64,000 nt of DNA from Monocercomonoides exilis PA203 (taxonomy: Eukaryota; Protista; Preaxostyla). The stretch lies in contig LSRY02000022.1 in assembly GCA_001643675.2 (NCBI GenBank), forward strand, positions 1,302,001 through 1,366,000, in the 5' to 3' direction. Under the pieces are notes generated by a model. It was not told where the DNA came from, made no database searches, and saw only the letters and a list, made by a program, of their open reading frames with translations. A program made the position numbers and the translations under genes. Within the stretch, counting starts at the first letter, position 1. The number at the start of each line of letters is the position of its first letter. This document shows positions 25,030 through 49,196 of this stretch, piece after piece.

Positions 25030-28000
25030 GGTTAGGGTTAATTGTGACAAAAACTCGTTTTTCAGACAAGCAACTACTGAGATATCATGATTTGTGATAT
25101 TATCTGACAACTTTTCTGTCATGACTTATGAAAATATTTGATTTTTATTGAAAATCCAGTCAAAAACAATGATAAAATAAATTTTTTAAAAATGATTGAG
25201 AACAATGACAAATCTGATTGTAGGTTCGGGTTAGACCGTGCTGAACCTGATGATTGTTGTTGTAGTTTTTGTGGTCATCTAATAGAAACTCAGGGAAAAA
25301 ACTTAATTTTTTAGTCATTTTTTCAGTCATTTTAACATGTCATTTTTGACCAAAAATTTGCCTTACCCCCGAGTTTGATGGGGGGTGCCCAGCCTCCAGT
25401 ATGTGGCCTTCGTAGAAGGCGGACGCGGAGCGGACGCCTTCTAAAACCTCGTTTCCTGCCTTTTCACAGGGCCTGCGCCCTGCAAAACCGACCCTTCTGG
25501 GGTCATATTTGACCAACACTGAAAATTTCATATATTCGTTCCTGTCACCTGGGCATTTCATCTGACAACCCCCACACCACCCCCACACCCCCCATACCCA
25601 CTGACACTCCCACTGTATATATCTGTTATAATGTCAGAATATCCTTTGATTTTTAATGAATTTTTCTTGTCATTTTTTTGAGTGAAGAAAAACAATAAAT
25701 ATTTTATATCTCACTGGAATGACTGATTTGGAGGGAGATATTTTGCCAGTGTGTTAGTTGTGAATTATGTGTAATAAAACAATATTGGAGAAAAAAAGAA
25801 AAAATTGAAAATTAATTAATTGAATATTATTGTTTTCATTCAGACAAGTCATTTGACTGAAAATATATAAAAATAATTTTTTAAAAAATAGAAAAATTTA
25901 GGTTGCAGTTAAAGTGCGTTGAAATATGCCTGAATTATCCCAACAAATATTAATAATTAATTATCACAAAATTATCAATCAACTTTTCTATCATGACTTA
26001 TAAAATAATTGAATGTTTATTTCTATTTATTCAAAAATAATAATAAAATAAATTTTTTAAAATCTATCATGCACTCGGTTAGGGTTAATTGTGACAAAAA
26101 CTCGTTTTTCAGACAAGCAACTACTGAGATATCATGATTTGTGATATTATCTGACAACTTTTCTGTCATGACTTATGAAAATATTTGATTTTTATTGAAA
26201 ATCCAGTCAAAAACAATGATAAAATAAATTTTTTAAAAATGATTGAGAACAATGACAAATCTGATTGTAGGTTCGGGTTAGACCGTGCTGAACCTGATGA
26301 TTGTTGTTGTAGTTTTTGTGGTCATCTAATAGAAACTCAGGGAAAAAACTTAATTTTTTAGTCATTTTTTCAGTCATTTTAACATGTCATTTTTGACCAA
26401 AAATTTGCCTTACCCCCGAGTTTGATGGGGGGTGCCCAGCCTCCAGTATGTGGCCTTCGTAGAAGGCGGACGCGGAGCGGACGCCTTCTAAAACCTCGTT
26501 TCCTGCCTTTTCACAGGGCCTGCGCCCTGCAAAACCGACCCTTCTGGGGTCATATTTGACCAACACTGAAAATTTCATATATTCGTTCCTGTCACCTGGG
26601 CATTTCATCTGACAACCCCCACACCACCCCCACACCCCCCATACCCACTGACACTCCCACTGTATATATCTGTTATAATGTCAGAATATCCTTTGATTTT
26701 TAATGAATTTTTCTTGTCATTTTTTTGAGTGAAGAAAAACAATAAATATTTTATATCTCACTGGAATGACTGATTTGGAGGGAGATATTTTGCCAGTGTG
26801 TTAGTTGTGAATTATGTGTAATAAAACAATATTGGAGAAAAAAAGAAAAAATTGAAAATTAATTAATTGAATATTATTGTTTTCATTCAGACAAGTCATT
26901 TGACTGAAAATATATAAAAATAATTTTTTAAAAAATAGAAAAATTTAGGTTGCAGTTAAAGTGCGTTGAAATATGCCTGAATTATCCCAACAAATATTAA
27001 TAATTAATTATCACAAAATTATCAATCAACTTTTCTATCATGACTTATAAAATAATTGAATGTTTATTTCTATTTATTCAAAAATAATAATAAAATAAAT
27101 TTTTTAAAATCTATCATGCACTCGGTTAGGGTTAATTGTGACAAAAACTCGTTTTTCAGACAAGCAACTACTGAGATATCATGATTTGTGATATTATCTG
27201 ACAACTTTTCTGTCATGACTTATGAAAATATTTGATTTTTATTGAAAATCCAGTCAAAAACAATGATAAAATAAATTTTTTAAAAATGATTGAGAACAAT
27301 GACAAATCTGATTGTAGGTTCGGGTTAGACCGTGCTGAACCTGATGATTGTTGTTGTAGTTTTTGTGGTCATCTAATAGAAACTCAGGGAAAAAACTTAA
27401 TTTTTTAGTCATTTTTTCAGTCATTTTAACATGTCATTTTTGACCAAAAATTTGCCTTACCCCCGAGTTTGATGGGGGGTGCCCAGCCTCCAGTATGTGG
27501 CCTTCGTAGAAGGCGGACGCGGAGCGGACGCCTTCTAAAACCTCGTTTCCTGCCTTTTCACAGGGCCTGCGCCCTGCAAAACCGACCCTTCTGGGGTCAT
27601 ATTTGACCAACACTGAAAATTTCATATATTCGTTCCTGTCACCTGGGCATTTCATCTGACAACCCCCACACCACCCCCACACCCCCCATACCCACTGACA
27701 CTCCCACTGTATATATCTGTTATAATGTCAGAATATCCTTTGATTTTTAATGAATTTTTCTTGTCATTTTTTTGAGTGAAGAAAAACAATAAATATTTTA
27801 TATCTCACTGGAATGACTGATTTGGAGGGAGATATTTTGCCAGTGTGTTAGTTGTGAATTATGTGTAATAAAACAATATTGGAGAAAAAAAGAAAAAATT
27901 GAAAATTAATTAATTGAATATTATTGTTTTCATTCAGACAAGTCATTTGACTGAAAATATATAAAAATAATTTTTTAAAAAATAGAAAAATTTAGGTTGC

Positions 28001-48543: not shown

Positions 48544-49196
48544 TGAAAATTATTTTTTTTCTTCACAACCACTTCTTCTAATTTTTCCAAAAAATAGTGG
48601 ATGTACTGCACTCATGCAGACTATGCTTCAGAATTATTGTCTTGAAGAAATAAATTTATTTCGATTTTTAGGAATTTTTATATGGGAAAAACACAAAAAA
48701 TTGTGTATCTCGATGGGGAAGGGAAATTGAGCCAAATCCTTTCACCCACATCTTAGTTGTGAATTATCGGTGATATTCCAAAACACAGAAAAAATAGGAA
48801 AAATTACAAAAAATACACATTTATTGACTTTTCTTCACTCAGGTTATCATAGAAAATGAGATAAAATGAATTTTTATAAATTTGACTCAGAATTATCATT
48901 TCAAATAAAAATATGGAATTTATTAGAAAAGTGATATCATGTTTATAGAAATAATATCAGGTCAATATCTGCACTGTTTGTTGAGATATGAATTTTTCAA
49001 TGTTTTTCAGTCATTTTTCAGTCAAAACAGAAAATATTTATTTATCTCAAAAGAGAGGTATGACAACAATATGAATTATCAACATGTACTAGTCTACCAT
49101 CCATGTTTATTTATGTGAATTATCCTCAGGATCAGCCAGGGTCATGTCAAATTATATATAAGAAGTTATCCCCTTTGTAACTTTGGTGTGACAGGA
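48544..49196. mobile_element. Right terminal arm (653 bp) of the array-expanded copy of the 28S-inserted element
   Basis: Matches 49925-50577 at an offset of 1381 bp, and both copies end in tgtgacagga directly before 28S sequence. Confidence 0.75.

Follow-up and report, generated by a model that had tools for sequence, protein, structure and literature searches.

In the alga Chlamydomonas reinhardtii, most chromosome ends carry direct tandem arrays of ~850-bp monomers, the SUbtelomeric Long TANdem repeat (Sultan), each monomer of which contains a telomere seed (PMC8287924). The ribosomal DNA (rDNA) arrays of this alga are likewise subtelomeric, with an rDNA-associated element and a satellite on their centromere side (PMC8287924). 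Here we describe a satellite of 1047-bp units from Monocercomonoides exilis, an oxymonad, in 64 kb of contig LSRY02000022.1 (the whole stretch analyzed, hereafter the window), where the array stands between gene-bearing DNA and rDNA. We consider it probable, at roughly 0.72, that this repeat is a subtelomeric long tandem repeat, that is, a telomere-associated satellite of M. exilis, and that a neighboring 1244-bp piece lodged between two 28S ribosomal RNA (rRNA) fragments represents diverged edge monomers at a duplicated satellite/rDNA junction.

Several other systems bear on such a locus. Yeast Y′ elements and the "roll-and-spread" arrays of K. lactis are tandem subtelomeric units separated by short telomere-repeat tracts, whose amplification and transfer from one end to another proceed through recombination, break-induced replication or rolling-circle copying; Y′ elements are 5–7 kb long and encode a helicase. 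In Giardia, truncated rDNA or rDNA spacer is found capped by telomeres. The class D subtelomeres of Chlamydomonas are built in the same way, from truncated rDNA or spacer with a telomeric cap (PMC8287924). Finally, the rotifer R9 element, an rDNA-specific non-LTR (non-long-terminal-repeat) retrotransposon of the R2 clade, is cited as making a 126-bp target-site duplication (PMC6895275).

The telomere repeat of M. exilis is TTAGGG (PMC6759080), and its genome was assembled from Oxford Nanopore Technologies (ONT) reads and then polished with Illumina reads (PMC8767320). On rDNA and chromosome ends, the two genome papers give only a figure of ~50 rDNA units and telomere counts (PMC8767320, PMC6759080), and we found no publication on rDNA or subtelomere architecture in any oxymonad.

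Results

The window covers positions 1302001–1366000 of the contig record (1,379,369 bp; assembly GCA_001643675.2) in the same orientation, so that window position x is record position x + 1,302,000, and the contig ends 13.4 kb past it. Direct-repeat analysis showed that 25030–~48145 is a head-to-tail array with a start-to-start spacing of 1045–1049 bp, apart from one spacing of 871 bp. Cut in the register of its most conserved part, the core, the array holds 22 full monomers and a 262-bp partial one at the left, in keeping with the ~1047-bp unit proposed in the first-pass annotation of this DNA. Its parts are as follows.

25030–25040, + strand: left array junction, where the seed GGTTAGGGTTA directly follows unique DNA
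25030–36129, + strand: block A, monomers 1–10 and the start of chimeric monomer 11
36130–45818, + strand: block B, monomers 12–19 and the flanking chimeras
45819–48145, + strand: block C, monomers 21–22, the block closest to the rDNA

Each monomer reads, in order, an 11-nt seed, ~45 nt of array-specific sequence, a ~210-nt tail, the 420-bp CpG-rich core, a ~130-nt head and a ~240-nt variable segment, of which tail, core and head form the conserved part (~760 nt). Monomers abut directly, with no spacer between them, both here and in a second array described below. The core is a GC- and CpG-rich island with hairpins, contains 54 nt that are invariant across all monomer types, and folds moderately better than its shuffles (z about −3). 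A 37-nt invariant stretch of the core had no match in JGI metagenome contigs or GTDB genomes, and an 82-aa open reading frame (ORF) within the core returned nothing in a word search of protein databases that covers only products of 45–143 aa.

The monomers fall into homogenized blocks. In block A, nine of ten monomers are identical, and monomer 8 (at 33 kb) deviates by its deletion alone, a loss of 176 bp that corresponds exactly to one copy of an internal ~175-bp subrepeat and that removed the seed as well; because the assembly was made from ONT reads with Illumina polishing, a collapse or the polishing to a consensus may be part of the reason for the 100% identity among monomers 1–10 and for the copy number. 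Block B is 93% identical to block A, and its monomers vary among themselves by 1–3-nt length changes alone. The two chimeric units each contain a single switch, from A to B at unit position ~544 in monomer 11 and from B to C at ~813 in monomer 20.

The 11-nt telomere-repeat seed GGTTAGGGTTA is present in 21 of the 22 window monomers, always on the + strand with its G-strand towards the chromosome end; monomer 8 lacks it because the 176-bp deletion took it. A 9-nt part of the seed, TTAGGGTTA, has 22 matches in the window against 0.42 expected, all of them on the + strand and inside the array. The left edge of the array coincides with this motif: homology to the next monomer begins at 25030, exactly at the seed, and in a satellite-free paralogous segment from another contig (locus L002) homology to the window is lost at 25027–25029. 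A second telomere-like 12-mer, GGTTCGGGTTAG, which differs from the telomere repeat by one mismatch, was observed in the monomer tail, ~190 nt past the seed and oriented like it (23 copies, the first at window 25223).

Other loci in the 82-Mb assembly were reached only through annotated proteins, the decisive one as the surroundings of a paralog of a gene flanking the array; the satellite was looked for in the window and in ten such loci, one of which was positive and nine of which (~0.19 Mb) were negative. The positive locus, L003, lies at the beginning of LSRY02000007.1 (contig 7, 2.05 Mb; positions 2451–24922). An initial ~570 nt of (CCCTAA)n telomere is followed directly by seven full and two partial satellite monomers of 1035 bp, then by 1.6 kb of further sequence and a paralogous gene, which in the window's orientation reads gene, satellite (+), (TTAGGG)n. 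The locus contains no rDNA and nothing of the arm sequence that borders the core in the 1244-bp piece. The monomers of the two arrays have in common their tail, their core and the initial 130 nt of the head, with 90–95% identity over core and tail. Block C is the window block most like the contig-7 array (93.6% over the conserved 760 nt), and the contig-7 monomer is in fact closer to block C than block C is to block A, while its ~290-nt variable segment is unrelated.

Both edges of the contig-7 array are informative. On the proximal side, the array again begins with the seed, here as two full repeats plus TTA, next to unique DNA unrelated to that in the window, and its monomers contain the seed motif, placed and oriented as in the window. 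For two independent junctions to fall by chance within a few nt of the same 11-nt motif in a 1-kb unit seems very unlikely. With both array junctions at the seed, the arrays were presumably laid down on telomeric repeats at truncated chromosome ends, as the sequences of the junctions suggest. On the distal side, the final monomer breaks off at core position 371, where TTAGG/TTAGGG repeats take over, a join that looks like a healed break. The first ~seven telomere repeats beside this truncated monomer (L003 540–600) read TTAGG rather than TTAGGG; these may be variant repeats at the healing site or nanopore homopolymer errors.

A different arrangement was found at the end of LSRY02000036.1 (contig 36; L007 13855–17091), where a 0.5-kb segment resembling the rDNA spacer of the window is joined, with nothing in between, to 2.7 kb of (TTAGGG)n. 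The segment matches window 53827–54322 in the same orientation with 82% identity, rising to 95% over the last 120 nt, and the homology stops at 54322. It could be either a spacer-derived fragment healed by telomerase or a part of the spacer that is itself a subtelomeric element. No satellite was found at this telomere-bearing end; the remaining negative loci and the window outside the array (40 kb) lacked it too. Those eight loci lie, in some cases, 11–40 kb from contig ends, and none includes a tip; the loci sampled on contigs 26 and 42 (start side) and on contig 63 (end side) stop short of it. Because it is absent from the telomere-bearing end of contig 36, the satellite is not at every chromosome end, and rDNA-related DNA does occur at telomeres.

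At its right end, the window array passes into a region in which satellite-like and 28S sequences alternate.

48146–48562, + strand: core of divergent monomer E1, its first ~160–250 nt of C type and the remainder of E type
48563–49196, + strand: right arm copy 1, with 100% identity to copy 2; it comprises all of a monomer outside the core, in diverged form
49197–49333, + strand: 28S rRNA fragment (Rfam match 49203–49342, 153.6 bits, E = 1e-38)
49334–49524, + strand: left arm, apparently a diverged monomer tail in register with the core
49525–49943, + strand: core of divergent monomer E2, by homology to the core
49944–50577, + strand: right arm copy 2; core and arm together measure 1053 bp, about one monomer
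50578–51134, + strand: 5′-truncated 28S rRNA gene, the last ~557 nt (Rfam match 50537–51134)

The 1244-bp piece spans 49334–50577, between the two 28S pieces. The first-pass annotation had held that the satellite unit shares its core with this piece, where it occurs once, that the last unit runs without a break into the right arm, and that the arm keeps a diverged echo of the unit, and each of these observations was borne out. The first 420 bp of the monomer, i.e., the core, recur once in the piece, at 49525–49943, with 87–90% identity. The segment 48146–49333 matches 49525–50714 with 98.2% identity over 1190 bp, and homology to the array ends within it at 48562. Right-arm positions 190–481 share a 15-mer and ~300 collinear nt at ~60% identity with the monomer head (z = 7 against dinucleotide shuffles), while positions 438–512 match the monomer tail (z = 5.3–5.5, 0/500 shuffles); across the right-arm comparisons z was 5–7, with the score attained by 0–1 shuffles. 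The left arm in turn matches the monomer tail (z = 6.0, 0/500 shuffles; z = 5.5 against the contig-7 monomer), and the aligned stretch stops 74–75 nt before the core in both. Satellite and piece are thus homologous, and the piece is best read as the tail of one diverged monomer followed by one complete diverged monomer, with the 28S apparently beginning near the point at which a further core would be expected. Contiguity of the right-arm end with the left-arm start was looked for in the monomer but not demonstrated.

The 28S sequences on either side of the piece differ in extent. The 137 nt at 49197–49333 (large subunit (LSU) model ~2825–2984) duplicate the first part of the truncated 28S that begins at 50578; the first ~40 nt of the Rfam match to that gene are of low confidence, and its left boundary could sit ~20 nt further left. 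Upstream of model position ~2825, no 28S was found at the satellite/rDNA junction locus, and the window contains no further 3′ half of 28S. E1 can be told from E2 by 21 positions, which are confined to the initial 250 nt of the core, where E1 carries C-block sequence; over the next 939 nt, from there through the arm and the arm|28S junction to the end of the 28S piece, the two are identical. With a C-type start and an E-type remainder, the E1 core is, to judge by its sequence, a recombinant. A 137-bp direct repeat of 28S around a 1244-bp piece is explained equally well by a target-site duplication and by a tandem duplication of the junction; since the arm|28S junction is present on both copies, the upstream 28S piece being preceded by the right arm and by no further 28S, we favor a tandem duplication. 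The pattern fits a satellite/28S junction that already existed and was very recently duplicated in tandem, over 1381 bp, with an exchange in the core afterwards.

We also looked for signs of other identities. The 1244-bp piece has no ORF longer than 66 aa and no Pfam domain at E ≤ 0.01, so no remnant of a reverse transcriptase or endonuclease; no terminal inverted repeat pairs the ends of 49334–50577, which also bear no tail, and Helitron ends (TC...CTRR) are absent when those ends are read directly. ARAGORN found no tRNA-like fold, and Rfam returned only LSU matches, with nothing else below E = 7. On these grounds, a DNA transposon, miniature inverted-repeat transposable element or Helitron was not supported (no inverted repeats, no Helitron ends), nor was a group I intron, ribozyme, small nuclear RNA or short interspersed/tRNA-derived element (no Rfam or tRNA match). 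An R2/R9-type element interrupting continuous 28S was not supported either, on the finding that the upstream 28S piece is only 137 nt long and is preceded by the right arm. No 28S remnant was detected inside the 1047-bp monomer (z about −1), and the likeness of the seed region to the beginning of the 28S piece (TAGGG.TAA) proved not significant and was dropped. Nor was a satellite derived from the intergenic spacer supported, as neither the monomer nor the 1244-bp piece had a BLAST match to the spacer of the window (51135–59847).

Beyond the truncated 28S gene, the window contains spacer and the first complete rDNA unit, transcribed towards the contig end.

51135–59847, + strand: rDNA intergenic and external transcribed spacer, with subrepeats of its own that are unrelated to the satellite
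59848–64000, + strand: first complete rDNA unit (18S 59848–62849, 5.8S 62970–63133, start of 28S 63350–64000)

The 18S gene is 3.0 kb long owing to large expansion segments, for example in the V2 region, which fits an oxymonad; a group I intron was not detected in it. Between 55200 and 58300, the spacer holds ~190–370-bp subrepeat families and a pair of 178-nt inverted repeats (55858–56035 and 58125–58302), none related to the satellite, and ten spacer ORFs had no exact counterpart among the annotated proteins searched. At 51482–51575, 350 nt downstream of the real 28S end, the final ~95 nt of 28S (LSU 3300–3397) are matched weakly a second time, at 27.6 bits (E = 0.001), which is short of the gathering score; the spacer may here hold a decayed copy of the 28S 3′ end.

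On the other side of the array, two annotated genes precede the satellite.

17715–20186, − strand: P0001, a single-exon gene for an 823-aa membrane protein, member of a paralog family
23996–25561, − strand: annotated spliced gene model of 234 aa, whose 5′ end lies 530 bp inside the first monomer

The protein of the 827-aa ORF at 17715–20198 (−) matches only M. exilis, namely 49 MONOS_* paralogs (best 77% identity) plus P0001 itself. The family thus has at least 49 M. exilis paralogs and looks subtelomeric, because seven of the nine located members (in the window and in loci L002–L006, L008, L009 and L011) lie within ~62 kb of a contig end. The start of the 234-aa model falls in the 82-aa ORF of the first monomer's GC-rich core, and the satellite-internal part of this model is probably an annotation artifact, arising from gene prediction on unmasked, unclassified repeats. 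At L002 5129–9298, between paralogs of the two genes that flank the window array, adjacent genes encode reverse-transcriptase (RVT_1) and tyrosine-recombinase (Phage_integrase) domains, a content that would be that of a DIRS-like retrotransposon. The gene-bearing part of the window also includes a 141-nt T-rich run (11528–11668, 75% T).

Discussion

The arrays on both contigs sit between unique gene-bearing DNA and the side of the chromosome tip, which is occupied by a telomere on contig 7 and by rDNA in the window. We favor a telomere-associated satellite, and the following course of events would account for the locus. An array would have been seeded on telomeric repeats at a truncated chromosome end. 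Unequal sister-chromatid exchange or break-induced replication would then have enlarged it and homogenized it one block at a time. The two units now beside the rDNA would be old, poorly homogenized edge monomers; their escape from homogenization, save for conversion of the core, would explain why their cores are 88% identical to the satellite and their arms 60%. The rDNA would have been joined, at a breakpoint in 28S, to the end of the terminal monomer. A very recent tandem duplication of 1381 bp over the satellite/28S junction would have taken 137 nt of 28S along, so giving the appearance of an insertion with a long target-site duplication, and an exchange within the core would afterwards have linked the upstream copy to the C-type array. 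By analogy with other systems only, the satellite would probably serve as a heterochromatic buffer and as a reservoir of telomere-healing seeds at the chromosome end.

Several points weigh against this reading. Only one additional satellite locus was found, so that the notion of a subtelomeric family rests on two arrays, and nine other sampled loci are free of the satellite, the telomere-bearing end of contig 36 among them. On LSRY02000022.1, a telomere is presumed beyond the rDNA, the distal 13 kb of the contig being outside the window, and the array itself lies 54 kb from the contig end with the rDNA distal to it. The homology between arms and monomer is weak (60–70% identity, z = 5–7) and complicated by the internal 175-bp subrepeat, and for two stretches of the right arm, its first 190 nt and its last ~120 nt, nothing corresponding was detected in the monomer. 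The 1381-bp period would also be produced by a site-specific element with a 137-bp target-site duplication that had inserted twice, and the perfect identity of E1 and E2 could be an effect of assembly or polishing.

Among the other explanations, the one that survives best, though we regard it as unlikely, is terminal addition. Here monomers would have been added singly at the chromosome end, either by reverse transcription of a ~1-kb non-coding RNA primed by the G-overhang (cf. HeT-A and telomere-attached Penelope-like elements) or by rolling-circle ("roll and spread") copying of a 1-kb circle with a telomere seed, and recombination would only have reshaped the arrays later. It would account for the start of every monomer with telomere repeats in G-strand orientation (the seed having been lost in monomer 8), for the start of two arrays on different chromosomes at telomeric repeats and in the same monomer phase, and for the longer seed of two full repeats at the contig-7 junction. 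Independent additions, however, would be expected to vary, whereas the seed is constant at 11 nt in internal monomers and no unit is 5′-truncated; we therefore favor recombination over rolling-circle or RNA-mediated terminal addition. Moreover, no reverse transcriptase is encoded, and the blocks of identical monomers and the chimeric units point to exchange. Of the two modes of amplification that the first-pass annotation had thought plausible, unequal exchange fits the three homogenized blocks, the single-switch chimeras and the subrepeat-sized deletion, while rolling-circle copying cannot be told apart from it by sequence alone.

A related and rather improbable scenario is that the arrays came from telomere-primed copying of a seed-bearing 1-kb template, by a rolling-circle "roll and spread" process or by break-induced replication, and that the rDNA was captured at this chromosome end by similar template switching. 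If so, M. exilis ends would be rebuilt by recombination-based events resembling alternative lengthening of telomeres, and the CpG-rich core could be a subtelomeric promoter or a protein-binding module.

We also weighed whether the array length, the identical monomers or the 1381-bp duplication might have been created by nanopore assembly or polishing at the edge of the rDNA, which we judge to be distinctly improbable. Nine of the first ten monomers are 100% identical, as is monomer 8 outside its 176-bp deletion; block B varies only by length changes of 1–3 nt, such as ONT errors typically cause; 13 kb further on, the contig ends within rDNA; and the assembly combined ONT with Illumina data (PMC8767320). 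Misassembly would nevertheless hardly yield three distinct blocks with ordered chimeras, precise junctions at both ends and an independent array of the same family on contig 7.

The least probable of the explanations, and to our mind a very doubtful one, is the tempting notion of a non-autonomous, 28S-specific mobile element of 1244 bp that inserted twice in tandem with a ~137-bp target-site duplication and whose core and part of the arm were later amplified into the satellite. In its favor, the 1244 bp lie between direct 137-bp repeats of 28S, element and duplication add up to the 1381-bp period, the 126-bp duplication cited for rotifer R9 is a precedent (PMC6895275), and the core (88%) is far better conserved than the arms (60%) between element and satellite. 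Against it, it is the right arm and not upstream 28S that precedes the left 28S copy, with no 28S 5′ of model position ~2825 at the locus, there are no reverse transcriptase or endonuclease remnants, tail or terminal repeats, the arrays start at telomere seeds, both arms look like diverged parts of a monomer, and the satellite lies under a telomere without rDNA or arms.

The first-pass annotation had proposed just such an origin, with the satellite as an amplified copy of a mobile 28S element, and this part of it was not supported: the satellite lies under the contig-7 telomere without rDNA or arms, its arrays start at seeds, the hallmarks of transposons that were looked for are all missing and the arm|28S junction occurs on both 28S copies. 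That annotation had reasoned that satellite copies at many loci away from rDNA and without the arms would speak against the element as their source; such copies do exist, at one locus, LSRY02000007.1, among the few chromosome ends sampled. The further idea that the array caps the rDNA cluster was right in placing it at the boundary between gene-bearing DNA and a 5′-truncated rDNA unit, and this holds for the single boundary examined.

The telomere-associated satellite that we favor would give a first picture of a metamonad chromosome end, in which a subtelomeric gene family is followed by a seed-bearing 1-kb satellite and then by a telomere or terminal rDNA, and it would set right the tempting view of a 28S-specific mobile element with a giant target-site duplication. 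The locus may also provide a handle for finishing the assembly, in which ~65 contigs have one telomere only, and for asking how rDNA comes to lie at chromosome tips and is kept there.

Compared with known systems, the M. exilis locus shares with R9 and other rDNA-specific retrotransposons of the R2 clade a long direct repeat (~137 bp of 28S here) around a 1.2-kb segment that is not rRNA. Unlike them, the M. exilis piece has no ORF or domain remnants, its upstream flank is not continuous 28S, and its arms appear to be satellite-derived. In contrast to the Y′ elements, the M. exilis unit is 1 kb long and non-coding, and no sign of telomerase-independent maintenance was seen at the loci studied. 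Like class D subtelomeres, M. exilis has rDNA oriented towards the chromosome end, and the spacer-like piece of contig 36 is capped by a telomere; unlike them, the truncated unit of the window is on the centromere side and fused to satellite instead of telomere. The greatest likeness is to Sultan: both have ~0.85–1-kb monomers in direct tandem arrays adjoining telomeres (in M. exilis, on contig 7), a telomere seed in each monomer, a centromere-side boundary of unique or spacer DNA, segmental duplication within arrays, and rDNA bordered towards the centromere by a satellite. M. exilis departs from Sultan in that one satellite family adjoins a telomere at one locus and rDNA, on its centromere side, at another, and in that the distal monomer of contig 7 is capped inside the core, out of phase with the seed. 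The likeness is one of architecture; no sequence relationship is expected between an alga and an oxymonad; Sultan nonetheless appears to be the closest described case, and by this analogy the M. exilis array would represent the same architecture in an unrelated lineage.

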